NCBI RefSeq assembly: GCF_000737315.1 | Contig: NZ_JMCB01000009.1 | Location: 264,373-328,372, forward strand | Length of the DNA: 64,000 bases | Direction of reading: 5' to 3' | Origin: Hyalangium minutum | GTDB taxonomy: Bacteria; Myxococcota; Myxococcia; Myxococcales; Myxococcaceae | In this document: positions 1,138-18,859 of the stretch, in pieces | Layout: every line of letters begins with the position of its first letter | Position numbering within the stretch: the first letter of the stretch is position 1 | Translations under genes and position numbers: made by a program | The notes under the pieces: generated by a model | Told to the model about the DNA's origin: nothing | The model's input: the letters and a program-made list of their open reading frames with translations, nothing else | Databases searched by the model: none

Positions 1138-3327
1138 TCACGCCTTGACGTCGAGGCGCTGCGGCGGCTCTCCGCCCGAGGACTGAGCGGAGTGCCCAGG
1201 GCCGTTGCCACCGGCGGGCTTGTCCTCCTGCGCGGGCTTCTCGGCGGACTGCTTCTCCAGCATGGACTTGGAGAGGGCGTGCTCGTCAGCGGCGCGGCGG
1301 GCCTCGCGCTCCTTATAGCGGCGGATGGCGGGGGCCATGATCTCGCCAATGAGCGTGCGGTAGTCCATCCCGGCGCCCTGGGCGATGAGCACCAGATCGC
1401 TCCAGCCCGGGGTGAGGCCCGGTAGCGGGTTGCACTCGATGAAGAAGATGCGCCCCTTGTCATCCATGCGGAAGTCGATGCGCGCCACGTCGCGGCACCC
1501 CAGCGCCATGAACGAGCCACGGGCCGCCGCGCGCAGCTTCTCCAGCAGCGCCGGCTCGATCTTCGCGGGCGCGTCGTAGCGGATGCGATCGGTCCAGTCG
1601 AGCTTGTGCTGGAAGCTGTAGACGGGGTTCTTCTCCTCCTTGTCGAGGAAGACGATCTCCATGGGCGGCAGCACGCGCGGGCGGCGCTCGCCGAGCAGGC
1701 CCACGGTGAACTCGCGCCCGCCGATGTACTCCTCGATGAGGGCCGGCTGCTGGTACTTGCCGACGATCTCCTTCACCACGTCGCGCAGCTCCGCCTCGCT
1801 GTGGCAGACACTCTTGCTCACCACGCCCTTGGAGGAGCCCTCGGCCACGGGCTTCACCATGAGCGGGAAGCCGGTGAAGTCCTTGTTGAGGCGCTCCTTG
1901 CCGGTGTGCATCAGCTGGAAGGTGGGCGTGTGGATGCCGGCCTGGCGGACGATCTTCTTGGCCAGGGCCTTGTCCAGCGCGAGCGAGAGCGTGGCCGGAT
2001 CGCTGCCCGTGTACGGGATGTCGAGCAGCTCCAGCATGGCCGGCACTTGGCTCTCGCGGTTGCGGCCCTTGAAGCCCTCGGCGATGTTGAAGACGATGTC
2101 CACCGGCGTGCTGGCCAGCACGTTGGGCAGCTCCTGGTTGGCCTCGAGATCAATCACCTCGTGGCCCCAAGAGGCGATGGCCTCGCGGATGGCCTGGAGC
2201 GTGGCGGGCGAGTCATACTCGGCCTCGCTGTCCTCGGAGGCATCCACGGTGGGCTTCACGCGCTTGACGTTGTAGGTGAAGCCCACGCGCAGCGGGCCGC
2301 TCTTGCGCGCCGGCTTGCCCTGGCGCCGCGCCGAGTCCTTGATCTTGTACCGCTTGGCGGCGCTCTGGATGATGCTGCCGATGACGCCATCCATGTGCAG
2401 GCCCTCGAGCTCCGCGGAGGCGTAGATGCCGGCTCCGGGCTCCAGGCTGGGCAGCGCGTTGATCTCCAGGAAGTACGGCACGCCCGCGTCGCTGAGGCGG
2501 AAGTCGATCCGGCCCAGGTCGCGGCAGTCGAGCACCTTGAAGATGGTCTGCGCCATCTTGCGCACGTCCTCGGCCGTCTTCGCGGGGATCTGGGCCGGCG
2601 CGCGCACGCTGACGGACTTGAAGTTCTTCACCTTCAGGTCGTAGTCGTAGATGGAGTACTTGCGGCTCGAGGTGGCCGCCGGATCGATGATGTACTCCAC
2701 GGGGGTGAGCACGCCGTCGAAGTCATTGTCCACGGCGGCCAGGAAGGGCACCGTCAAGTCACGCCCACCGATGTACTCCTCCACGAGGACGCCGGCCGGG
2801 TACTTGGCCAGGGCCTGGGCCACCTTGGTGCGCACCTCGTCCAGCGTCTCCGCGATGGAGTCCTGGGTGATGCCCTTGGAGGAGCCCTCGAAGTTCGGCT
2901 TGACGATGACGGGGAAGCGCAGGTTCTCCGCGGTGAGCTCGCTGAGCTTCTCCACGTACTGCCAGCCCGGGGTACGGATGCCGTGCTTGGCGAGGATCAG
3001 CTTGGTGAGCTGCTTGTCCAGGGTGACGGCCAGGGCATACGCGTCGCTGGCGGTGTAGTGGAAGCCGAGCTCCTCGAAGAGGGCCGGATAGAAGGCCTCG
3101 CGGAAGCGGCCGCGGCGGCCCTCGGCGGTGTTGAAGATGAGATCGGGGCTGTAGGCCTCGAGCCGGGCGACGGTGCGCGAGGCGGGGCCGCTGACCTCGA
3201 AGCGCTCCAGCCGGTGGCCGAGCCGCTCGATGGCGCCCGCCAGGGCGTTCACCGTCTCCTGGGTGTCGAACTCCGCTTCCTCTTCCGAGTCCGAGAGCCT
3301 GAGGTTGTACGTCAGCGCGATGCGCAC
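1138..3327 (-). CDS. D-Ala-D-Ala ligase-like ATP-grasp protein with two complete fused domains
   Basis: Two copies of FN(T/I)AEG..GR.RE, YT(A/G)SD..LDK, VKP..EGSSKG, EEYI.GR, RIDFR and E.N.LP. GTG start at 3327 (VRIALTYN). Confidence 0.85.
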   Translation of the reverse strand: MRIALTYNLRLSDSEEEAEFDTQETVNALAGAIERLGHRLERFEVSGPASRTVARLEAYSPDLIFNTAEGRRGRFREAFYPALFEELGFHYTASDAYALAVTLDKQLTKLILAKHGIRTPGWQYVEKLSELTAENLRFPVIVKPNFEGSSKGITQDSIAETLDEVRTKVAQALAKYPAGVLVEEYIGGRDLTVPFLAAVDNDFDGVLTPVEYIIDPAATSSRKYSIYDYDLKVKNFKSVSVRAPAQIPAKTAEDVRKMAQTIFKVLDCRDLGRIDFRLSDAGVPYFLEINALPSLEPGAGIYASAELEGLHMDGVIGSIIQSAAKRYKIKDSARRQGKPARKSGPLRVGFTYNVKRVKPTVDASEDSEAEYDSPATLQAIREAIASWGHEVIDLEANQELPNVLASTPVDIVFNIAEGFKGRNRESQVPAMLELLDIPYTGSDPATLSLALDKALAKKIVRQAGIHTPTFQLMHTGKERLNKDFTGFPLMVKPVAEGSSKGVVSKSVCHSEAELRDVVKEIVGKYQQPALIEEYIGGREFTVGLLGERRPRVLPPMEIVFLDKEEKNPVYSFQHKLDWTDRIRYDAPAKIEPALLEKLRAAARGSFMALGCRDVARIDFRMDDKGRIFFIECNPLPGLTPGWSDLVLIAQGAGMDYRTLIGEIMAPAIRRYKEREARRAADEHALSKSMLEKQSAEKPAQEDKPAGGNGPGHSAQSSGGEPPQRLDVKA

Positions 3328-3923
3328 GGCTTCCCCCTTCTTGCCCGCCTGAGCGAGCGGCCGCGGCGAATCTTCGCCGCGGACAAGAGTCGTCCCGGGG
3401 CGCGCTGATGCGCCACGGGGGTGCGGGCGGCAACGGATGCGCCCGCGACAACCTTCCCATCCACCACCTGCGTCTGGGCCCACATGTCCCCCAGCCGCCA
3501 GCCAAGCGGATCCTTGAGGACGCGCCATCCCTCCAGCCCCCCGATGACGAGGAGCCCCCCGGCGCCCGCCACCAGGCCCAGGCCCTCGGGCATCATCCCC
3601 AGGAGGATGATCAGCGCGAGCGGGGCATTGCGGAGAGCGCTGTCGCGGTGGCGCGCGGCCGTGTGCGTAGGCAGGTAGATGACCTTGACGCCGAAGATGC
3701 GCTTGCCGGGGCTCTGGCCATGGAGCATGCCGTCGGCCAGGAGCACGAAGAGCAGCGCCACCACGGAGCCGGCGGCGCCGCAGACGACCCACAGGCCCCA
3801 GGCCACGGCGATGTCCACCAGCCGTGCGCCCAGGCGCAGCAGGAGCGCGGCCTTGGGATACGGCGAGCCGGACAGAATCTCTCCCTCGTGGACGAGGCGC
3901 AGCGCGCGAGGACCGGAGTTCAC
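3312..3923 (-). CDS. RDD family membrane protein
   Basis: RLGARLVD, GQSPGKRIFGVKV, LRN, GWRLGDMWAQTQVV. Overlaps both neighbours in an operon. Confidence 0.85.
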   Translation of the reverse strand: MNSGPRALRLVHEGEILSGSPYPKAALLLRLGARLVDIAVAWGLWVVCGAAGSVVALLFVLLADGMLHGQSPGKRIFGVKVIYLPTHTAARHRDSALRNAPLALIILLGMMPEGLGLVAGAGGLLVIGGLEGWRVLKDPLGWRLGDMWAQTQVVDGKVVAGASVAARTPVAHQRAPGRLLSAAKIRRGRSLRRARRGKPCASR

Positions 3924-4429
3924 TCCTCGGGCTCCAGCGTGAGGCCCTTCTCGAGGGGCTCGGGCTCATCCAGGCCGGCCAGCTGGGCCAGCCGCTCGTA
4001 GGCGCTGATGGGCATGCGCTGGGCCTGGGTGCGCTTGGCGTGGGCGCGCGCGTTTTCGGCGGCCAGCTCGGCGGTGGGCGAGCCCGTCTCGGACAGACGC
4101 ATCAGCCGCTCGCGGGCCTCCTCGGTGTCATGCGCCGGGGCCTCGCTTTCCCGGGTGAAGAAGACGAAGGCCATGGCCGGGCGCTTGGAGGCCTCGCGCA
4201 TGGCGAACTGCACGCCATCCAGGTTCCAGCCCTTGGGGACCCACTCGTTGAGGGTGCGCTCCAGCGAGCCCTCATCCACGGTGGACAGCTCGACAACCTT
4301 GTACTGGAGGGGGCCGGGCGCGCGGATGACAGGCGTATGGCCTGCTCCAGGGCGCTTCCCGGCTCGACGCTGACGTTCGGGCGGAGGTTTCGCCGCCTTG
4401 CGCTTGGGGCGCTTCTTCTTCGTGGGCAT
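3920..4429 (-). CDS. hypothetical protein with DUF4177-like domain and basic N-terminus
   Basis: QYKVVEL...LERTLNEWVPKGWNL pattern. Stop overlaps the RDD start (GTGA). Confidence 0.65.
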   Translation of the reverse strand: MPTKKKRPKRKAAKPPPERQRRAGKRPGAGHTPVIRAPGPLQYKVVELSTVDEGSLERTLNEWVPKGWNLDGVQFAMREASKRPAMAFVFFTRESEAPAHDTEEARERLMRLSETGSPTAELAAENARAHAKRTQAQRMPISAYERLAQLAGLDEPEPLEKGLTLEPEE

Positions 4430-8872: not shown

Positions 8873-9477
8873 AGCGCTCGGAGTTGGTGGCGCTCGTCGA
8901 CATGGACGGGACGCTGTGCGACTACGAGGGGGCGATGGCGCGGGATCTGGAGAAAATCCGGAACCCACAGGAGCCGCCGCTGAAGATGCGAGAGCACCAC
9001 TCGGTTCCGTGGTTAAGGGAGCGGGTAGAGCTGATCCGGCGGCAGCCGGGCTGGTGGGCGGGGTTGGAGCGGCTGAAGCTGGGCTTCGACGTGCTGGAGG
9101 AGCTTCGGGCACTGGAATTCGAACTCCACATCCTGACGAAGGGGCCGGCGCAGGCGACGAGCGCCTGGACGGAGAAGCTGCAGTGGTGCCAGCGGCACGT
9201 ACCGGACGCACGCGTGACGGTGACGATGGACAAGGGCTTGGTGTACGGGAAAGTGCTGGTGGATGACTGGCCCGAGTACATCGAGCGCTGGCTCACCTGG
9301 CGGCCGCGGGGCCTGGTGATCATGCCCGCGCAGCCCTGGAACGAGGACTTCCAGCATCCGAACGTGCTGCGCTACGACGGGAGGAACCTGGACGTGGTGA
9401 AGACGAGCCTGCGGGCCGTAAAGGAGCGGGCGCTGGCGCTGCCGCCCGACGATGTCCCGCCGCTCCCCGAGAGTTGA
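8869..9477 (+). CDS. HAD-superfamily 5'(3')-deoxyribonucleotidase (NT5C-like)
   Basis: HAD motif I VDMDGTLCD, motif II LTKG, conserved K (EKLQW), motif IV LVDDWP. ATGA overlap. Confidence 0.75.
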   Translation: MKRSELVALVDMDGTLCDYEGAMARDLEKIRNPQEPPLKMREHHSVPWLRERVELIRRQPGWWAGLERLKLGFDVLEELRALEFELHILTKGPAQATSAWTEKLQWCQRHVPDARVTVTMDKGLVYGKVLVDDWPEYIERWLTWRPRGLVIMPAQPWNEDFQHPNVLRYDGRNLDVVKTSLRAVKERALALPPDDVPPLPES

Positions 9478-9484
9478 GCACGGC

Positions 9485-9976
9485 ATGTCCCTCTCCACCT
9501 TGTGCCAGCGCTGTGGGCTCTGCTGCGACGGGAACCTGTTCTCGTCGCTGCCGTTGCGCCGCTCTGAGGTGGAGCCAATGCGGCGGCTCTCACTACCCGT
9601 GGTGGAGCGGACAGATGGAACGCCGGGGATCGAGCAACGCTGTGCGGCGTTGGATGGGCGGTGCTGCACGGTGTACGCGGAGCGTCCCGAGGCCTGCCGC
9701 CGCTACCGCTGCCACCTGCTGACGGCGGCGGCCGAAGGCGAGGTCTCAGTGGAGGAGGCACTGGGAGTGGTGGATGAGGCTCACGCGCGCATCCGAGCCG
9801 TCGAAGCCGCCCTACCCCTGGAGCGCCTGGGTTCTCCCCAAGCGGTGCTACAGCGTGCGAGACACGAAGACCAACCGGAAAACGGCGGTCCCCTGCCCCG
9901 CGAGACGCAGGAACTCTGGAATCAGGCGGAGAGCCATCTCGACCGCCACTTCCGAGGCCGACACCGCCGGATGTGA
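9485..9976 (+). CDS. YkgJ/UPF0153 family cysteine-cluster protein
   Basis: CQRCGLCC ... C ... CTVYAERPEACRRYRC. Confidence 0.88.
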   Translation: MSLSTLCQRCGLCCDGNLFSSLPLRRSEVEPMRRLSLPVVERTDGTPGIEQRCAALDGRCCTVYAERPEACRRYRCHLLTAAAEGEVSVEEALGVVDEAHARIRAVEAALPLERLGSPQAVLQRARHEDQPENGGPLPRETQELWNQAESHLDRHFRGRHRRM

Positions 9977-10127
9977 ACATGTCATTGCAGGTGCATCGCC
10001 TGCGTCACAACTCAGCAACATGCGCTGCGGATAATTTCTCCCCAGGCTAGTTGGTCACGATGTCGCATTCATCACTGCGGCGAATGGCATTCGCGCAGAG
10101 TAACGATAAGCCAAGTTGAGGTGGACA

Positions 10128-13100
10128 TCATCTCCACAACTCTTCCGGAATCCATGAGCGCCCCCAGTCCTTCAACTCTTTGGCGCCTCTTGGCCCTAGC
10201 ACACGATCCGGGAAAGGCGTGGGGTCGTCCGGCGAATTTCCCCAGAAATAGTAAGGGACCACATCAAGTAGTAAATGCAGAGCAGACCCTTGATCGGATC
10301 CAAAATTATATGTCCCTATATTAGCCGGATCCGTTACAAGCTGCCCATCCCTGAAGACAACCTCGCAGTGTCCATTGGGAGAGATAAATTTCTTGTTTCT
10401 CTCGTTCCCCAGCCCGTGCTGATGATAGACCGCTTTATCGGCAGGCACTGGAATCCAGCTTTTCGAGGCGAACTCATAAGACACGACACGATTATACTGA
10501 TTCCTATTATAATGTAGATCCTTCGCGATGACTATCCCCACAGCAGCCACGATAGCCCCAATCGGGACGGCAAAAAGACCAGACGGATCTACGTGCATGT
10601 GCGGCTGATTTGCCACGTATACATAAAAATTGGTGTCACCACCTGCAAAGCGAATAGGATCCTTGGTGGTCCACCTGCCTGTCTCGGCATCGTAGTCTCT
10701 AGCCCCAAAGCGGGTGAGTTTCGTGTCCCTGTCGTAAAGCCCCCCTGCAAAACCAAAGGGTTGGAAGCCTGGGTTGGAGTCAGCAAGCACGTTGCCCCAA
10801 ACGTCGTAGTCCAGTCGCTGAGCCACATTTCCATTGGCGATATCCACCACGAGGCGGGGGCTGCCTAGGTGATCCGATATGATACGGTAAGTGGTTCCCC
10901 CCTTGACCATATAATCGGGTGAGTGGCCTTGAGTGGCATACACGAAACGGGACACCACTTGATTGCTGCTATTCAACTCAGCAATCACTCGCAACTGCCC
11001 ATCATAGAGAAAACCTTGAGTGAGAGCGCCATTCACCATCTTGCCCACTCTTCGGCTCTGCGCATCCACTACGTACGCAATCCGTGTTCCGTTAGGAAGC
11101 GTGGCTGAGTGGAGGTTGCCCAAGGAGTCATACACATAAGTGGTGGATTGGGTCCCCACCTGCTTGCTCTGCAAATCTCCGCTGGGCCCATAGGTGTAGG
11201 TCGCATTACCAAACGTTAGCAACCGGTCCTGAGCATCGTAGGAGGCGGTTCGAGTTACACCCCCTACGACAAGTGCGGTGCGGTTGCCATTACCCGCCCC
11301 CCCGTTGTCGTAAGTGGCGTGGGAAATAACGGTACCGTCCTCTTGCAAATCCTCCAGTCTTCCTGCTGCGTCATACGTATAGACGTAGGTATGAGTCGTG
11401 CCCTGCACCGTCTCGAACTTACGATCAATGCGCCCCACGGCATCCCTGCGTAGTTGCACTGAGTAGAGGGATACGCTACCCCACGAGGTAGAAAGGCTTT
11501 CAATCTCCCCATAGGCATTGGGAACAATCGTAGTGGACACTTGCCCCAGAGTGGTGTCGGTAAGCACGCCATTCGTAGGACTGCGCACAAGCACCATGCT
11601 GCCAGCCTGTTTCATCAGCCCATCCTCGTCGTAGGCGTACACCACCGGGTTGGCGCCATTTATCGAAAGAGAGAAGGGGCGGAAGAACGCGTCATAGTTA
11701 TAGGAGACACTCCCGCTCACCCCTGTACTCCACGTCACCTGCTTAAGCAGTGCCCCGTCATACACATAGTTGAGGCTGGCCCCTTGCGAGTCTGTCAGCG
11801 ATTGAAGGTACCCACTCACGGGGTAGTAGACGGCCTGCAGTGTGCGAGCACTGTATCGACTGCTGCTCGGAGGAGTAGCCGTGAGGATCTGCAAGCGCCC
11901 TTTCTTGGACGTAGCATTATCCTCGTAGAAGGCCTGCACATCCGCCCCATCCGGATACGTAGACTGCTTCCACTGCCTGTCCACATTGTACTCCGAGTGG
12001 GTGTGTACGCGGGGCACGCCCGTGAGGCTGGGAGGGGTGTAATCCTCCTCCGCATCCGTCGGCGTGTAGGTAAACGAGTGTGCGGGTTGTCCTGAGGGCA
12101 CTAGGGTCTTCAAATTACCGTTGGCGTCGTAGTCGAAGTTCACCTGCCGGTTGCCCGGCAGCGCCTGCCCTCGCACCCGGCCTGCCAAATCATAGGAGAA
12201 GCTTGCAGTGCGGCCGAGTGCATCGGTCACCGTGTTCAAATATCCCTCGGGCTTATAGGTAAATGTGGAACTGCGGGTCCCCTGGGCGAGCAGCCTCAAC
12301 TGCCCTTCCGTGTCATAGTCATACGTCACCGGCAATATCCCTGGGACCTCCACCTTCACCACCTTGCCCTTGTCGTCATAGGTGGTCGTGACCTGTTTCC
12401 TCATAGGGCTCTGCTGAGTGAGTTTGCGCGTCGAGGCCTCGTACGTGAGGGTGGTGGTGAGCCCATTCACCGTCAGCACGTCCGTAAGCGTGGACAGGCT
12501 CAGCACGTCTTGTGGGTTGGTGAGTGTCACCGTGCGGCTGTGGCTGAAGTTTTGGGTCAGCCCACTGGGCAACTTCACCGTCTGGGAGCTCACCAGCGGA
12601 ACCTGCATCCCAAAGCGCGCATCCGGCCCCTCCACTGTGGTCACCAGTGTCCCATCCGCCGCAGTGACGGCAGTGGTGCCATTGGAGTTTCGCAGCGTCG
12701 TGGACACCTGGCCCGCTGCCCCCGTGAGGGTGCGCTGCTGCTCACCGGAGGAAAGGTTCTGCACCGCATACGTCGTGGTGCGGCCCATGGCAGTGCTTAC
12801 TGCCACGTTGTATCCGTTGGCGGTCTCGGTCCGAGCCAGAGCCTTGAATCCGCCCCCGGGCTGGTTGTCCTTCTTCAGCCTCCCATCCGGCTCATACTCG
12901 AACGTGTGCAAGCCTCCTCGAGGATCCTTGAGCGACGTCAAGAGACCACCCGCAGTATGAGCCAGTTCGATTGTCTCCGAGGCGGGATTCGTGACGGAAG
13001 ACAGATAGCCATTGCCATCCAGCCCCAACGTGGTGCGCTGGCCATGAGGCGCCACAATGGTCAGGGGCTTTCCCGAAGCATCCCGCTCCACCCGAGAGAT

Positions 13101-16100
13101 CAACCCATCCTCGTCCTTCACGGTCATCAACCGCCCAGCTTCGTCGTAGCCGAACTCGAAGCGCACCGACTTCGTCAGCGCGTCCAACGTCCGCAAGTGA
13201 CGCCCGCTGGAGTTGAAGACATAGACCTCTCCTCCATCCTCAGAGGGAATGATCAGGTCCTCGGAGCCAAACCCAGGCAGCGAAGAACTCACCTTGCGGA
13301 TGCGCTGACCCGACCATTCCGAGATGAACAGGCTCCCCTCTGGGCTGAGAGCCAAGCCACGAGGCGTATGGACCTGGGCCTGAGCCACAGGCCCCCCACT
13401 TCCACCCGAAGCGGGAAACCCCGTCCCCGTCACCGTGGTGATGATGCCATCGGGGCTCACTTTGCGGATGCGATGGTTCCCTGCATCAGCGATGAACAGA
13501 GTGCCACTCAGGTCAACCGCAATCCCTCGGGGCTCAAGCAACCGAGCCTGCGTGGCCGGCCCGCCATCTCCGCTGTAGCCAGGACTCGACGTCCCCGCCA
13601 CGGTGGTGATGATGCCGTGAGGGCTCACCTTACGAACACGGTGATTTCCTGTATCGGCAATCCAGAGATTTCCCGCTGAATCCAGCGCGATCTTCTGCGG
13701 GAGGTTCAGCCGCGCCTGGGTGGCCGACCCACCATCGCCACTGAATCCAGAAGCGCACTTCCCGACAGCCGTTGTGATCACCCCATCCGGACCTACCTTC
13801 CGGATGCGGTGATCATCCGCAATGAAGAGGCTTCCATCGCTTCCCAGCGCGATTCCCTGGGGGCCATACAGTCGTGCTTGCGTGGCGGGCCCACCATTTC
13901 CGCTGTACCCCCGGTTCCCAGTGCCCACCACGGTGGTGATGATCCCCTGAGAGTTGACCTTCCGGATGCTGAAGTTCCCCGTATCGACAATGAACAGGTT
14001 GTTCTCCGCATCCACCGCGATGTCTTGCGGAGACCGGAACTGGGCCTGAGTCGCGCTCCCACCATCTCCGCTGTAGCCCGGCACTCCGGTTCCAGCGACG
14101 GTCGTGATCGTCCCAGCCGGGCTCACCTTGCGGATACGATGATTCGCACTGTCCACAATGAAGAGGCTGCCATCCCGGCCGACCGCGATCCCTTCAGGCG
14201 ACAAGAGCTGGGACTGCGTCGCGGGCCCTCCATCCCCTCCAGAGCCCGGCACGCCTGTTCCAGCGACGGTCGTGATGACGCGCTGATTGAGGTCCAATGA
14301 GCTGCGGCGCTGCCCATACCCCAGATAGAGGACCTTCCCCATGGCGTCATAGGCGTGCTGGACATCGAGGGTCCATCCTCCCAGCCCCTGCGACGAAGAC
14401 TTGAACGTCCCCAGACTGCTCTCCCAATCCTGCCACAGCGTCATCTCACGCGTGTCTTGAGCAGCCGTGAAGGGGATACCCGAAATCCGTCCGAAGGCCT
14501 GCCCAAACTCCGCAGGCTGTTGGTAGATGAGCGAGTAGACATAGCCAACGCGAACCTTCGCGGGCCACTCCCCTTGCAAGACGCGCCCATACGCGTCCTT
14601 CCCATCCCACTCGAAGGTGTATTGCTGATTCACGGCGGCGGGGAACGTGTGCGTAAACCGCTGCCCAGCAATCTCCACCTCCAGCACCATCCGCCTGAGA
14701 CTGGCGGGCAGAGAGGCGCCGCTCAGGGGAACCTTCAGCCGGTAGTTCGTCTTCCGCCCCGGCACCCGGTCGCTCCTGTAATGCAAGCCGAACGGAGCAC
14801 CCACGAGCTCAATGGCTTCCCCCAAGGTCTGGGTCTGGCACTCGATGATCGACCCGCAGACGGCATCGGGCTTCTCCTCGGGCTTCTCCGCCTGAGGAGG
14901 TGACTGAATGGGCGCCTCTGCATCCAGGGGCGGACCGTAAGGCCAGTTACAATCCCACGGCGTGAAGTGGACGATGGGGGTGCGCCAAAGCGTCTTCCCC
15001 GCCGGGTACAGCCGCCCCAACTGCTGCAGTTCATCATCCAGGATGCCCAGGGGCACCAGCACATCAGGCCCGTCCGCGATCCCATCCCCATTCACATCCA
15101 ACACGGCCACGTTCGCATTGATGCCGAGGATCTTCACCACACGGCCGTTGTCCGAGGGCTTCCACACCCCAGACCTCCTGTCGTAGTAGCCCGCCGGCAC
15201 CACGCTCCCCACCGGGAAGTTCAGGAAGTTGTCCACGTACAGCGGCACCGGCTGCGTGAAGCGGACCTCCACGGCCCCGGCGGCCTGGGCCTCGTCCACG
15301 CTCAGCTCCACCGCATAGGTGTAGCCGCTGGTGGGCGGCAGATCTCCCGGCATCGCGTCCGGCCCTCGCTCTCCCACGGTGTACTCAGTGGCGCGCACGT
15401 GCCCCGTGGAGAGCGTCTGCGTGCTCCCATCGGGCAGCTCCATGCTCACCTGGGTGTTGGGAGGAAAGAGCAGGGTCGCCCGCCGTGTCCCGTCCGCGTC
15501 CGTAACGGGAGCGCCTTGCGCCACCTGCATCCCCGTGCTGCCCCCACCAAACTGCACTGGGGTCACCTGGGCATCGGCGCCCACCAGCACCACATCCTCG
15601 AGCCAGGCGTAGTTCTGCCAGGCCGGTTGCTCCTGGCGCTGAGAGGGCATGTACCCCGCCAGTTCGTACTGCAAGGTGAGCGGCACGCCTCCATTCACGG
15701 CCATGTCGAACATGCCGTTGGCTCGCGTCAGCGTGGCCCCAAACTCCGGATGGCCCAGCACGGACACCTTCACCCCTACCAGGGGGTTGCCCTCTCTCCC
15801 CTTCACGTGTCCGCGAAGCACCGCCACCCGCTTCGGGTCAATCGTCCCCTCGGCAACCCCTGTCTGGATCGCATGGGGGCCCGTGTAGAGAAACGCGGTG
15901 GCTTCGATGAACGGCGTTACCGCCGTCTCACTCACGGGCGTTACCACCTCTTCCAGTTCTGGACGCACCGTTACATGGAGCGTGGCTTCCGCCGGATTGC
16001 CAGCGGTGTCCTCCACCCGGGCCACCAGCGTGAGTGCCCCGGCGGCCAGCGTCACGGTCCCCTGCGCCCCCCTCTCCCCAGCGGAGAGCTGAGAGGAGAG

Positions 16101-16346
16101 GTCCTGCCCATTCACCAGCAGCCGGAAAGAGCCAGGCGCCACCCCCGAGGGATCGTCATAGGTCAGTGCGATGGTCTGGACGGTGCCATGGAGCGTGCTT
16201 CCCTCCTCGGGGCTCGTGAAGACCAAGGACGGTGGCGTCTCGTCCTTCGGGCCGGAGAGGGGCGGGTCATCCGCACAGCCTCCCAGCCATAGCGTCCCCG
16301 CGACCATCCACCACCCGAGAATGAACCGCAGACTTGAACGTTGCAT
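10128..16346 (-). CDS. teneurin-like RHS/YD-repeat lipoprotein with NHL propeller and C-terminal toxin-like tip (2072 aa)
   Basis: Lipobox LGGC, Ig domain, and teneurin-type segments VLRGHV..LVGVKV..TLTRANGMFDMAVNGG and YTFEWDGKDAYGR...VRVGYVY. Then six NHL repeats, YD repeats, and RHS core end PFGFAGGLYD...RDYD..TGRWTTKDP...DPSGL. Confidence 0.92.
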   Translation of the reverse strand: MQRSSLRFILGWWMVAGTLWLGGCADDPPLSGPKDETPPSLVFTSPEEGSTLHGTVQTIALTYDDPSGVAPGSFRLLVNGQDLSSQLSAGERGAQGTVTLAAGALTLVARVEDTAGNPAEATLHVTVRPELEEVVTPVSETAVTPFIEATAFLYTGPHAIQTGVAEGTIDPKRVAVLRGHVKGREGNPLVGVKVSVLGHPEFGATLTRANGMFDMAVNGGVPLTLQYELAGYMPSQRQEQPAWQNYAWLEDVVLVGADAQVTPVQFGGGSTGMQVAQGAPVTDADGTRRATLLFPPNTQVSMELPDGSTQTLSTGHVRATEYTVGERGPDAMPGDLPPTSGYTYAVELSVDEAQAAGAVEVRFTQPVPLYVDNFLNFPVGSVVPAGYYDRRSGVWKPSDNGRVVKILGINANVAVLDVNGDGIADGPDVLVPLGILDDELQQLGRLYPAGKTLWRTPIVHFTPWDCNWPYGPPLDAEAPIQSPPQAEKPEEKPDAVCGSIIECQTQTLGEAIELVGAPFGLHYRSDRVPGRKTNYRLKVPLSGASLPASLRRMVLEVEIAGQRFTHTFPAAVNQQYTFEWDGKDAYGRVLQGEWPAKVRVGYVYSLIYQQPAEFGQAFGRISGIPFTAAQDTREMTLWQDWESSLGTFKSSSQGLGGWTLDVQHAYDAMGKVLYLGYGQRRSSLDLNQRVITTVAGTGVPGSGGDGGPATQSQLLSPEGIAVGRDGSLFIVDSANHRIRKVSPAGTITTVAGTGVPGYSGDGGSATQAQFRSPQDIAVDAENNLFIVDTGNFSIRKVNSQGIITTVVGTGNRGYSGNGGPATQARLYGPQGIALGSDGSLFIADDHRIRKVGPDGVITTAVGKCASGFSGDGGSATQARLNLPQKIALDSAGNLWIADTGNHRVRKVSPHGIITTVAGTSSPGYSGDGGPATQARLLEPRGIAVDLSGTLFIADAGNHRIRKVSPDGIITTVTGTGFPASGGSGGPVAQAQVHTPRGLALSPEGSLFISEWSGQRIRKVSSSLPGFGSEDLIIPSEDGGEVYVFNSSGRHLRTLDALTKSVRFEFGYDEAGRLMTVKDEDGLISRVERDASGKPLTIVAPHGQRTTLGLDGNGYLSSVTNPASETIELAHTAGGLLTSLKDPRGGLHTFEYEPDGRLKKDNQPGGGFKALARTETANGYNVAVSTAMGRTTTYAVQNLSSGEQQRTLTGAAGQVSTTLRNSNGTTAVTAADGTLVTTVEGPDARFGMQVPLVSSQTVKLPSGLTQNFSHSRTVTLTNPQDVLSLSTLTDVLTVNGLTTTLTYEASTRKLTQQSPMRKQVTTTYDDKGKVVKVEVPGILPVTYDYDTEGQLRLLAQGTRSSTFTYKPEGYLNTVTDALGRTASFSYDLAGRVRGQALPGNRQVNFDYDANGNLKTLVPSGQPAHSFTYTPTDAEEDYTPPSLTGVPRVHTHSEYNVDRQWKQSTYPDGADVQAFYEDNATSKKGRLQILTATPPSSSRYSARTLQAVYYPVSGYLQSLTDSQGASLNYVYDGALLKQVTWSTGVSGSVSYNYDAFFRPFSLSINGANPVVYAYDEDGLMKQAGSMVLVRSPTNGVLTDTTLGQVSTTIVPNAYGEIESLSTSWGSVSLYSVQLRRDAVGRIDRKFETVQGTTHTYVYTYDAAGRLEDLQEDGTVISHATYDNGGAGNGNRTALVVGGVTRTASYDAQDRLLTFGNATYTYGPSGDLQSKQVGTQSTTYVYDSLGNLHSATLPNGTRIAYVVDAQSRRVGKMVNGALTQGFLYDGQLRVIAELNSSNQVVSRFVYATQGHSPDYMVKGGTTYRIISDHLGSPRLVVDIANGNVAQRLDYDVWGNVLADSNPGFQPFGFAGGLYDRDTKLTRFGARDYDAETGRWTTKDPIRFAGGDTNFYVYVANQPHMHVDPSGLFAVPIGAIVAAVGIVIAKDLHYNRNQYNRVVSYEFASKSWIPVPADKAVYHQHGLGNERNKKFISPNGHCEVVFRDGQLVTDPANIGTYNFGSDQGSALHLLLDVVPYYFWGNSPDDPTPFPDRVLGPRGAKELKDWGRSWIPEELWR
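13287..14280 (-). repeat. six intragenic NHL repeats (about 56 aa each)
   Basis: Six copies of ITTVAGTG..G.SGDGG.ATQA.L..P.GIA.....LFI.D..NHRIRKV. Confidence 0.9.
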
Positions 16347-16447: not shown

Positions 16448-18859
16448 TCAGTCAACACACTCGAGCCGCACCGTCACCGTCACCCTGGCCGTGTCCGTAG
16501 CGCCACTTCCATTGGAGACGGTGTAGAGAAAGCTCATGTTGCCGAGAAAGTTTGGCGCGGGGGTGAAGCGCAGCACACCTCCGCTGAGGCTGACCGTTCC
16601 GCTGGCCGGCTGAGTCACGGAGGTGATGATGAGGGTCCCCGACGCCGAGCTGTCATTGGCCAGCACGTTCAGCACCGTGGGCCCGCTGTCATCCGCCACC
16701 GTGAAGGCGTCATTTCCGGCATGGAGCACGCTGTTCACCGTCACCGTCATCCACACCGCGGCCGTCGCGGATCCACCCGTCCCATCCGAGACCGTGTAGG
16801 TAAAATACGTGGTGCCAACGAAGGTCTCCGCGGGGGTGAAGCGCACCACGCCTCCAGAGAGCGTCACGGTGCCGCCCGTCGGCTGCGTCACCGCTACGAT
16901 GGTCAAGGTCTCCCCCAAATCCGGGGCCGATGAGTCATTGGCCAAGAGGTTCAACTCCGTGGCCTCGCTGTCCTCCATGACAGAGAAGCTGTCGTCTCGG
17001 GCTGTCGGAGGGTCGTTCACGGGCGTCACGGTCACGGTGACCGCAGCTGTATCAATCCCTCCATTCCCGTCGGAGAGGGTGTAGGTGAAGTTCGTGGTGC
17101 CGAAGAAGTCTGGAGCAGCGGTGAAGAAGAGCGTGCCGCCACTGACGAAGACCGAGCCGTTCGCGGGTTGAGTCGCTGAAGTGACGGTGCGCGTCCCCGT
17201 CGCAGAGGCATCATTGGCAAGCACATCCAGTGCAGCAGTCCCGCTGTCCTCGGCCACCGTGAAGGCGTCGTCCACCGCATTCGTCGCTACCGCCGTCACC
17301 GTCACTGTCACCGTGGCCGTATCGGTTCCTCCGATGCCGTCCGAGATGATGTAGGTGAAGTTCGTGGTGCCGACAAAGTTCGTCGCGGGGGTAAAGCGCA
17401 GCACGCCTCCTGTGAGGCTCACCGTGCCATTGGCGGGCTGGGTCGCCGCAGTCAGAGTGATTGTCCCCGATGCCGAGCTGTCATTGGCCAGTACGTCCAG
17501 CACGGTGGCTCCGCCATTCCGGGCCACGGTGAAGCTGTCGTCCACCGCATCCGTCACTGCCGCCAGCCCCACTCTCACGGTCACCAGAGCCGTGTCGGTC
17601 CCTCCTGAGCCATCCGAGAGGGTGTAGGAGAAGCTCGTGGTACCGGAGAAGTTAGACGCTGGGGTGAAGTTCACCATGCCCCCAGTGAGGACCACCGTCG
17701 CATTCGCCGGCTGTGTGACGGCACTGACGGAGATTGTCTCCCCCTGATCTGGAGCGGCGGTGTCATTGGCCAGAACATCGAGCGGAGTCGTCCCGCTGTT
17801 CTGGGCGACCGAGAACGTATCGTTCACCGCGTCCGGTGGGTCGTTCACGGGCGTTACCGTCACCGTCACCGAGGCGGTACTGGTCCCTCCACTTCCATCG
17901 GAGACCGTATAAGTGAAGCCCGTGATGCCAAAGAAGTTAGAGGCGGGGGTGAAGCGCACGACACCGCCACTGAGGGTCACCGTGCCGTTAAAGGGTTGAG
18001 TGACGGCCGTGACGGTGAGCGTCCCCGACGACGTGCTGTCGTTGGCCAGCACGTCGATCGCCGTTGGACCGCTGTCCTCAAGTACGGTCAAGGTGTCGTC
18101 GGTGGCCACCGGTCCGACGGTGTCGACCGTGAAGGTGTTGGCGTTCGACTGCGAGCCGGTGTTGCCTACTTCGTCGGTCGCAGTGGCTTGCACCACGTGA
18201 GAGCCATCCACCAGTAGCCCCGGGGAGGTGAAGCTCCAGTTGCCTGAGCCATCCACCGTCGTGCTGCCCACCACGGTCCCATCCACGATGATGACGACGG
18301 TGCTGCTGGGCTCAGCTGTGCCTGAGTAGGTCGGCGTCGTGTCGTTGATTCGCGAGCCGTTGGCCGGCAAGTAGATGGCCGGGGCGGCTGGAGGGGTGGT
18401 GTCCACCGTGAAGGTATTGGGCGTGGACTCAGGGCTGGTATTCCCTTGGGCGTCGGCAGCCGTGGCCCGTACCTCGTGAATCCCATCCGTCAGTGGCGTG
18501 GTCGAGGTGAAGGCCCAGGTACCTCCAGTCACTGCCGTAGATGTACCCAGGGACACACCGTCCACCAAGACGGAGACGGTGACCGTATTGCCTTGCTCAG
18601 TAGTGCCCGAGTAGGTCGGCGTCGGGTCACTCGTTCGCGAGCCGTTGGCGGGGGTAACCACCACAGGAGCAGGCGGAGCGGCGATGATGGCCGTAACGCT
18701 GTTGCCCTGACGTGCCGCCGCGGCATTCGCCGCGGGAGGAGTTTGGGTCTCTTGGCTACAAGAGAGACTCAGCGCTCCCAGCATGACTGGCAGCACCAGG
18801 AGTTTTGCAAAGACGGCGACCTTCGTCTGAAGGCATGGATCCACAGATCCCCCTCTCAC
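16448..18859 (-). CDS. Ig-like/cadherin-like repeat surface adhesin lipoprotein
   Basis: Lipobox LSLSC, two bacterial Ig domains (NGS...PTYSGT...VDG), six A.DD.F.V...DVLAND repeats. Start uncertain (18859, 18844 or 18784). Confidence 0.85.
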   Translation of the reverse strand: MRGGSVDPCLQTKVAVFAKLLVLPVMLGALSLSCSQETQTPPAANAAAARQGNSVTAIIAAPPAPVVVTPANGSRTSDPTPTYSGTTEQGNTVTVSVLVDGVSLGTSTAVTGGTWAFTSTTPLTDGIHEVRATAADAQGNTSPESTPNTFTVDTTPPAAPAIYLPANGSRINDTTPTYSGTAEPSSTVVIIVDGTVVGSTTVDGSGNWSFTSPGLLVDGSHVVQATATDEVGNTGSQSNANTFTVDTVGPVATDDTLTVLEDSGPTAIDVLANDSTSSGTLTVTAVTQPFNGTVTLSGGVVRFTPASNFFGITGFTYTVSDGSGGTSTASVTVTVTPVNDPPDAVNDTFSVAQNSGTTPLDVLANDTAAPDQGETISVSAVTQPANATVVLTGGMVNFTPASNFSGTTSFSYTLSDGSGGTDTALVTVRVGLAAVTDAVDDSFTVARNGGATVLDVLANDSSASGTITLTAATQPANGTVSLTGGVLRFTPATNFVGTTNFTYIISDGIGGTDTATVTVTVTAVATNAVDDAFTVAEDSGTAALDVLANDASATGTRTVTSATQPANGSVFVSGGTLFFTAAPDFFGTTNFTYTLSDGNGGIDTAAVTVTVTPVNDPPTARDDSFSVMEDSEATELNLLANDSSAPDLGETLTIVAVTQPTGGTVTLSGGVVRFTPAETFVGTTYFTYTVSDGTGGSATAAVWMTVTVNSVLHAGNDAFTVADDSGPTVLNVLANDSSASGTLIITSVTQPASGTVSLSGGVLRFTPAPNFLGNMSFLYTVSNGSGATDTARVTVTVRLECVD
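16466..18115 (-). repeat. six tandem cadherin-like (Big_9-type) domain repeats, about 95 aa each
   Basis: Recurrent DD.F.V..DSG.T.LDVLAND..TQP..GTV...GG..RFTPA.NF.G...FTY.VSDG.GG..TA.VTV. Confidence 0.88.

Follow-up and report, generated by a model that had tools for sequence, protein, structure and literature searches.

The C-terminal tips of polymorphic toxins have repeatedly been a source of new enzymes and of new antibacterial targets. In RHS/YD-repeat polymorphic toxins, among them the Rhs effectors of type VI secretion systems (T6SS), a swappable tip follows a common core ending in DPxGL, and the occurrence of one tip across many trafficking systems is regarded as the polymorphic-toxin signature (Zhang et al. 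2012, PMC3482391). The bacterial teneurin-like proteins (TLPs) share this general layout (Raoelijaona et al., Nat Commun 2026, PMC13018210), and in that article, Myxococcota TLPs are described with signal peptidase II (SPII) lipoprotein targeting, almost all TLPs are followed by an immunity gene, and the toxins tested were an ADP-ribosyltransferase (ART) and a membrane-active C-terminal domain. A third point of comparison is provided by the Lipocone toxins, e.g. the lipid II phosphatase TelC (Burroughs et al., eLife 2025, PMC12419801), for which periplasmic or membrane action was inferred from transmembrane (TM) or lipoprotein immunity proteins, and the absence of an immunity gene was described in the same study as a hallmark of predator-prey or interspecific toxins. 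Here, we analysed a stretch of 64,000 nucleotides from the myxobacterium Hyalangium minutum (contig NZ_JMCB01000009.1 of assembly GCF_000737315.1, positions 264,373 to 328,372; hereafter the window), which contains a TLP/RHS-type polymorphic toxin gene at 10128..16346 on the minus strand. Its 148-residue tip is a member of a large, widespread and unnamed toxin-domain family with a confident predicted structure for which no analogue was found, in a genomic context that points to the cell envelope. We read the tip as the payload of an unnamed enzymatic domain family that would act outside the target cytoplasm on a component of the envelope, and assign this reading a probability of roughly 0.6.

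The carrier gene (6219 nt) is a single open reading frame (ORF) encoding 2072 residues, and its assignment rests on Pfam and NCBIfam matches. Like the TLPs described in PMC13018210, its product combines the TTR, FN-plug, NHL and YD-shell superfold with a Myxococcota-type lipoprotein signal and a variable C-terminal domain of ~15 kDa. The Pfam matches comprise TTR_TEN1-4, FN-plug_TEN1-4, five TEN_NHL/NHL matches, a TEN_YD-shell of ~860 residues and RHS_repeat, the diagnostic set of FN-plug, NHL and YD-shell being represented by PF24329 (33.1 bits, cut-off 27.8), PF25021 (178 bits), PF25023 (150 bits) and PF25020. Residues M1-C24 (MQRSSLRFILGWWMVAGTLWLGGC; 16275..16346, minus strand), read straight off the translation, form a predicted lipoprotein signal peptide with the lipobox LGGC. 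The database gene call for the same protein (P0218) begins 40 codons downstream (MVFTSPEEG...), thus omitting this signal; the longer ORF start is the more plausible one. At the other end, a complete RHS-associated core (residues 1847-1924; 10575..10808, minus strand; ...YDAETGRWTTKDPIRFAGG...HVDPSGL), matched by TIGR03696 over positions 1-76 of 76 (E=4.8e-19), ends in DPSGL and directly precedes the tip F1925-R2072 (nt 10131-10574, minus strand; stop codon 10128-10130). RHS and Tc proteins release their C-terminal tip by autoproteolysis, and cleavage after DPSGL would be expected by the same token.

Within the tip, three parts can be distinguished, all on the minus strand. A linker, F1925-L1944 (10515..10574), contains a glycine-zipper-like hydrophobic helix (AVPIGAIVAAVGIVIA; nt 10524-10571) with a maximal 15-residue Kyte-Doolittle (KD) hydropathy of 2.64. 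It is followed by the conserved putative toxin domain of ~108 residues, H1945-P2052 (10191..10514), as delimited by profile search, conservation and structure prediction, and by a C-terminal extension, R2053-R2072 (10131..10190), which is peculiar to the window copy and predicted to be helical (predicted local distance difference test, pLDDT, 73-89); its columns are mostly gaps across the family alignment, and most members stop within ~10 residues of the domain.

A word-indexed protein search retrieved one relative of the tip only, the metagenomic RHS fragment P0001 (47 % identical, lacking the hydrophobic helix). A hidden Markov model built from these two sequences and searched exhaustively against 1.84 billion cluster representatives yielded 1612 clusters with E<=1e-3, of which 690 reached E<=1e-10. 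The 151 domain instances used for conservation and position analysis place the domain (~110 residues) almost always within ~10 residues of the protein C-terminus, the exceptions being internal or duplicated copies in giant multi-toxin proteins and in eCIS-core (extracellular contractile injection system) N-terminal marker proteins. Carriers include RHS repeats, the teneurin YD-shell, LXG, MafB, Phage_Mu_F, eCIS_core, an S-layer domain and a 25-residue DUF7211 N-terminal motif; furthermore, the domain is fused to Peptidase_M23 and Lipase_3 (class-3 lipase) domains, and some members consist of the domain with nothing but a Sec signal (P0003) or a TM anchor (P0198, P0091). A genome scan with 10 close sequences as query and one genome per species located 79 loci in Desulfovibrionaceae, Verrucomicrobiota, Gammaproteobacteria, Bacteroidota, Firmicutes, Lentisphaerae, Spirochaetes, Planctomycetes, Gemmatimonadota, Fibrobacter, Actinobacteria and Myxococcota. 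Conversely, the tip varies among homologous carriers: among the 120 best full-length homologues, a tip of this family occurs in just four, namely the window protein itself, a European Nucleotide Archive (ENA) metagenome protein and the proteins of two Cystobacter fuscus strains, and the remainder end in unrelated tails. Because the domain is spread over so many trafficking systems, we regard it as a polymorphic-toxin tip. An earlier interpretation made from the window's letters alone (the sequence-only reading) had likewise proposed a polymorphic effector. The carriers of the domain represent at least seven delivery routes: RHS, teneurin-like, LXG proteins of the type VII secretion system (T7SS), MafB, eCIS, MuF and phage DUF7211 proteins.

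Among individual carriers, P0002, a DUF7211 protein of 370 residues, contains two copies of the domain, as does P0024, a multi-toxin protein of 2960 residues whose first copy has a degenerate C-terminal motif. On an ENA metagenome contig (L005, 2234-5302), four consecutive genes between a phage terminase large subunit and a portal gene all start with the DUF7211 motif (HHGIKGMKWG.RRYQN) and differ in their C-terminal regions, one of which is the tip domain; no immunity-like genes are interleaved, and the set looks like a phage-borne polymorphic cargo array.

The sequence-only reading could match the tip to no named motif, and this was borne out: neither Pfam nor NCBIfam gave a match to the tip even at E<=1, none was found in PHROGs or among PDB sequences, and the family profile matched no PDB sequence either. 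Pfam scanned over 82 members returned no significant match and no nuclease, ART or deaminase model; weak Glyco_hydro127C matches (best E=0.023) were taken as noise. Thus, the family is uncharacterised in the libraries searched, as had been proposed, yet it is large rather than private to this protein. The 82-sequence alignment also gave a confident AlphaFold2 (AF2) model (mean pLDDT 94.8, predicted template modelling score, pTM, 0.83), whereas a prediction from a two-sequence alignment (pLDDT 51) was set aside. The model consists of N-terminal helices, a short strand, a beta-hairpin (KFIS-PNGH-CEVVF), a long helix and then short helices. A Foldseek search with the tip found no analogue in the PDB (best E 1.5, TM-score ~0.2) and nothing in BFVD.

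Conservation is dense. H1945, R1948, N1949, H1975, N1984, K1986, G1992, E1995, N2009, T2012, N2014, H2024, D2028, P2031, Y2032, G2036, N2037, D2041 and R2048 are invariant or near-invariant, and the window copy keeps every one of these positions (~20, polar or Gly/Pro). So many near-invariant polar residues (~20 in the alignment) speak for an enzymatic function, which we regard as the most likely one. The predicted secondary structure places H2024, D2028 and Y2032 on one face of the long helix, and the conserved residues probably group into an active site, a grouping that draws on conservation and predicted secondary structure. The strings highlighted by the sequence-only reading (AVPIGAIVAAVGIVIA, HYNRN, YHQH, KFISPNGHCEVVF, VTDPANIGTYNF and HLLLDVVPYYFWGN) all occur in the tip, and its suggestion that His and Asp residues serve as catalytic or metal ligands holds in part: H1945, H1975, H2024 and D2028 are near-invariant, but conservation extends neither to H1977, which is the second histidine in YHQH, nor to H1993 within NGHCE, and E1995, R1948, K1986, N2014 and others are as conserved as the histidines.

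Several known enzyme families were considered, and none found support. Lipocone toxins offer a works-like analogy only: they too have soluble tips on many carriers, TM or lipoprotein immunity proteins, helix-borne His/Asp residues, a beta-hairpin and immunity-less predator-prey versions, whereas the tip carries its HxxxD on one helix instead of a His on H2 and an Asp on H4 with the S-x-x-D...N clade signature. Membership in the Lipocone superfamily (TelC/CapCone/ClaspCone) is not supported at the level of motif, secondary structure or Foldseek, leaving room for remote homology: the model combines helices with a three-strand element, the S-x-x-D...N and DK/xD-x3-H signatures are absent, and Foldseek against the PDB gave no match at E<=0.001, with TelC, Wnt and SAA absent among the 50 matches listed. 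PAP2 phosphatases (KX6RP, PSGH, SRX5HX3D) resemble the tip only in SPDGH and HxxxD; KX6RP is lacking, no Arg lies six residues before H2024, the His of SPDGH occurs in 72 of the 151 sequences, no Pfam PAP2 match was found in the 82 members, and the model is not all-alpha. For HNH/beta-beta-alpha-metal nucleases, the hairpin His (H1993) lacks conservation, and neither a Pfam HNH/Tox-HNH nor a Foldseek match was found. In LAS/M15/M23 zinc peptidases, HxxxD or Hx6D combines with HxH/ExxH on a beta-sheet core, while the tip's HxxxD lies in a helix; there was no Pfam match to M15, M23 or VanY, and the sole M23 match by Foldseek in the PDB was LytU (E=2.6, probability 0.03).

The genes found next to the toxins point to the compartment in which the domain would act. 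In the loci other than the window, 41 of 51 downstream ORFs of >=75 residues (80 %) encode at least one TM-like segment, 22 of them being multi-pass; among 309 control ORFs drawn from these loci, the share is 39 % (odds ratio 6.4, Fisher p=3.7e-8). Among the ten downstream ORFs scored negative, two have clear lipoboxes, a third a signal-anchor-like N-terminus by eye, and most others look spurious. Several families recur: six Lentisphaerae/Victivallaceae loci share a multi-pass protein, Firmicutes have ankyrin-repeat proteins with a membrane or lipobox anchor, and there are also small proteins with three to four TM segments as well as lipoproteins in Desulfovibrionaceae, Granulosicoccaceae and Treponema; the gene of the closest tip relative (P0001) is followed by one for a 76-residue protein with three TM segments. 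This is good circumstantial evidence for the compartment, not proof. Taken together, these exported or membrane-bound neighbours, the forms in which a Sec signal precedes the domain alone, and the fusions with lipases and a peptidoglycan endopeptidase make a periplasmic or membrane-surface site of action appear the most plausible, by the same kind of argument as was made for the Lipocone toxins (PMC12419801).

A number of observations weigh against this interpretation. The TM and signal calls derive from a crude hydropathy rule, the choice of downstream ORFs was mechanical and includes spurious ones, and 39 % is a high rate for controls. The chemistry is narrowed down by neither homology nor a fold match. 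MuF and phage DUF7211 carriers are usually thought to deliver their cargo into the cytoplasm, and come without adjacent immunity genes. Finally, three of the four myxobacterial loci lack the expected partner: no immunity gene follows the toxin in the window, where 151 nt separate its stop from the end of a convergent gene for a CxxCxxCC-domain protein; in C. fuscus Cbf 10 a convergent gene overlaps the toxin stop and no immunity gene lies downstream; and on the ENA contig an IS3-type transposase sits 172 nt downstream of the toxin, again with no immunity gene. (The convergent gene of C. fuscus Cbf 10, L017 4372-5640 on the minus strand, encodes a product starting MERIFVSYRREDS...; judged by eye, its N-terminus looks like a TIR-type domain, behind which come a TM segment and a long tail that is acidic and rich in Pro.)

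The delivery argument would favour a cytoplasm-acting enzyme (a nuclease, NAD(P)ase, tRNase or similar), whose exported neighbours would then not be its immunity proteins. Most characterised RHS, LXG, MafB and MuF tips do act in the cytoplasm, the MuF and DUF7211 carriers suggest injection together with DNA, and a beta-hairpin followed by an HxxxD helix loosely recalls beta-beta-alpha-metal nucleases; set against this, however, are the excess of exported or membrane-bound downstream genes (80 % against 39 %) with families recurring across phyla, the existence of Sec-signal-plus-domain proteins, the variable hairpin His and the empty Pfam and Foldseek searches, and we consider such an enzyme improbable.

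The missing immunity gene raises a different possibility, namely that the tip is no anti-kin weapon here and represents either a prey- or host-directed effector needing no immunity, or non-toxic or decaying cargo. The gene cognate to a polymorphic toxin is expected immediately downstream; in the window it is absent from that position, although plausible partners are the rule across the family, and in this respect the window protein also departs from the almost universal pattern reported in PMC13018210. Its expected position is a 151-nt spacer (9977..10127) whose only ORF has 19 codons (10072-10131, minus strand; its ATG overlaps the toxin stop as ATGA), and a scan of the spacer revealed no promoter, terminator or unusual RNA fold. 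No homologue of any candidate immunity protein was found anywhere in the 64 kb. One such candidate comes from C. fuscus DSM 2262, where a 123-residue protein with four TM segments is encoded 236 nt downstream of the toxin (L086 10247-10618). It is credible as an immunity family because a homologue recurs beside a tip remnant in an Archangium metagenome-assembled genome: there (L073 863-1352), the last ~45 residues of a tip (...FLIDVVPYWVLGNSPNDPTPPWNRVTGP*), with the His of HxxxD replaced by Asn, lie beside a transposase-like fragment and are followed by a 73-residue membrane protein 48 % identical (E=3e-19) to the C. fuscus protein, i.e. an orphan tip/immunity module. No homologue of the C. 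fuscus protein is encoded in the window either. Either another part of the genome contains the immunity gene, or the predator uses the toxin on prey and needs no immunity. Myxobacteria are predators, and the lack of immunity genes in the window, in C. fuscus Cbf 10 and on the ENA contig matches the hallmark of predator-prey toxins noted above (PMC12419801). Yet the prey-directed version is compatible with, not opposed to, an envelope-directed enzyme; an intact ORF that keeps all near-invariant residues makes decay unlikely; and an immunity gene could sit outside the 64 kb. Taken as a rival, this explanation is to us unlikely.

The hydrophobic helix of the tip, to which the sequence-only reading drew attention, is present, but it is a non-conserved linker and no part of the domain. 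By the KD threshold, a glycine-zipper-like linker of comparable hydrophobicity occurs in only 3 of the 68 RHS-type members, with 2 others narrowly missing the mark; linker length in these 68 has a median of 19 residues, many having 0-9. Given this rarity, its absence from P0001 and the TM anchors of a few non-RHS members, the helix appears to be an optional membrane-associating linker outside the conserved fold. Killing without catalysis, in which this helix would insert into, disrupt or permeabilise the membrane, is very unlikely: its position directly after the cleavage site, the multi-TM immunity proteins typical of membrane-targeting toxins and the precedent of the Bacillus inaquosorum TLP (BiTLP), whose C-terminal domain is reported to contain a predicted TM helix, to need a signal peptide for toxicity and to render cells permeable to propidium iodide (PMC13018210), are outweighed by the scarcity of the helix, by a conserved part that is polar, compact and rich in invariant His, Arg, Lys, Glu, Asp and Asn, and by the BiTLP domain being only ~98 residues long, with no established homology to the tip.

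On the envelope-directed reading, the following course of events can be envisaged. By analogy with RHS and Tc proteins, the tip would be cut off after DPSGL and kept inside the YD shell until delivery. The released payload would comprise the optional glycine-zipper-like linker and the ~110-residue alpha/beta domain, with a putative active site built from H1945/R1948/N1949, H1975, N1984/K1986, E1995, N2009/T2012/N2014 and the one-helix-face triad H2024-D2028-Y2032. It would act in the periplasm of the target bacterium or on the outer face of its inner membrane, the hydrophobic linker of the window copy holding the domain at the membrane, and its substrate is likely to be an envelope component, be it a phosphate-bearing lipid, a lipid-linked cell-wall precursor or peptidoglycan. 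We would guess at a hydrolase whose substrate lies close to the membrane and probably bears phosphate (e.g. lipid II, an undecaprenyl carrier or a phospholipid head group), with peptidoglycan as the main alternative. This guess draws on the many conserved Arg, Lys, His and Asn residues, on how often the immunity candidates are integral membrane proteins, on the linker that would anchor the domain at the membrane, and on the fusions to lipase and M23 domains. A more far-reaching version, in which the tip founds a new enzyme fold that cleaves such a substrate at the envelope by hydrolysis, was recruited by at least seven delivery routes and is used by predatory myxobacteria, without linked immunity, to kill prey, seems doubtful, if conceivable.

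The carrier and its 3' end are also of interest with respect to tip exchange. Like RHS toxins, the protein shares its tip with LXG, MafB, MuF and eCIS carriers, has a low-GC, cassette-like 3' end and possesses a counterpart in the Archangium orphan module beside a transposase fragment; unlike them, its tip falls outside the Pfam Tox-/Ntox families, and its carrier lacks PAAR, VgrG or any T6SS marker and has predicted Sec/SPII export. With a GC content of 0.508 (local minimum 0.48), the tip is the GC minimum of the whole 64 kb; 447-nt segments outside the gene average 0.681 +/- 0.030, and none comes down to the level of the tip. The GC content of third codon positions (GC3) amounts to 0.53 in the tip, whereas it ranges from 0.72 to 0.92 over the first ~1600 codons of the gene and from 0.77 to 0.90 in the genes nearby. 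The sequence-only reading had the GC fall after DPSGL, but the fall is stepwise and begins ~1 kb further upstream, where, around residue 1600 (near nt 11550), GC3 drops from 0.72 to 0.58-0.62. Thus, the atypical tract (about 9900..12000, GC 0.48-0.57) takes in the last third of the shell (its last ~475 codons) and the downstream spacer besides the tip. Lying well within the part that codes for the YD shell, this step suggests that a boundary of recombination exists upstream of the usual DPxGL junction. It is also in the stretch after the step that similarity to the homologues from C. fuscus and ENA is highest (73-78 %).

All four myxobacterial homologues with this tip have a tip GC3 of 0.53-0.59 against 0.75-0.95 in the body, and their tips are 43-48 % identical to one another, compared with 73-78 % for the adjoining shell end. 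GC3, these identities and the Archangium remnant support cassette exchange and a foreign, lower-GC origin of the tip. The swap in this genome carries no date, because no close orthologue exists: the nearest other homologue (Archangium) is just 59 % identical, and those of C. fuscus ~52 %. The tip had been called "recently swapped", a claim that these data do not establish; the low-GC tract starts inside the shell, and the tips of the three other, distant myxobacterial homologues are similarly low in GC3 (0.54-0.59). In all, the sequence-only reading was right in kind, i.e. in proposing a polymorphic effector of an uncharacterised family, and went too far as regards the recency of the swap, the helix and two histidines.

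The C. fuscus DSM 2262 homologue with the same tip family (P0226) is included in the data set of the TLP article, in whose searched parts and supplements no functional label for the family was found, and neither of the two toxins tested there has the window's tip domain.

As to the surroundings of the gene, the convergent neighbour that bounds the locus (9452..9976, plus strand) encodes a CxxCxxCC zinc/iron-chelating domain protein (PF03692, E=2.3e-8). On the other side, a gene on the same strand as the toxin (16448-18859, minus strand) ends 101 nt upstream of it and encodes an 803-residue protein with six Big_9/cadherin-like repeats, which may be co-transcribed with the toxin as an adhesion partner. 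Further away, a 943-residue protein (1138-3969, minus strand) combines two ATP-grasp regions in an unusually long fusion, a complete C-terminal domain of D-Ala-D-Ala ligase being among them.

With ~1600 clusters in more than 10 phyla and in phages, a confident predicted structure that found no analogue and no name in the family libraries searched, the tip family is a well-defined candidate for the discovery of a new envelope-directed activity, and probably attacks the envelope of other bacteria. Bacterial teneurin-like proteins thereby gain another class of payload, which in myxobacteria often comes without the expected immunity gene.

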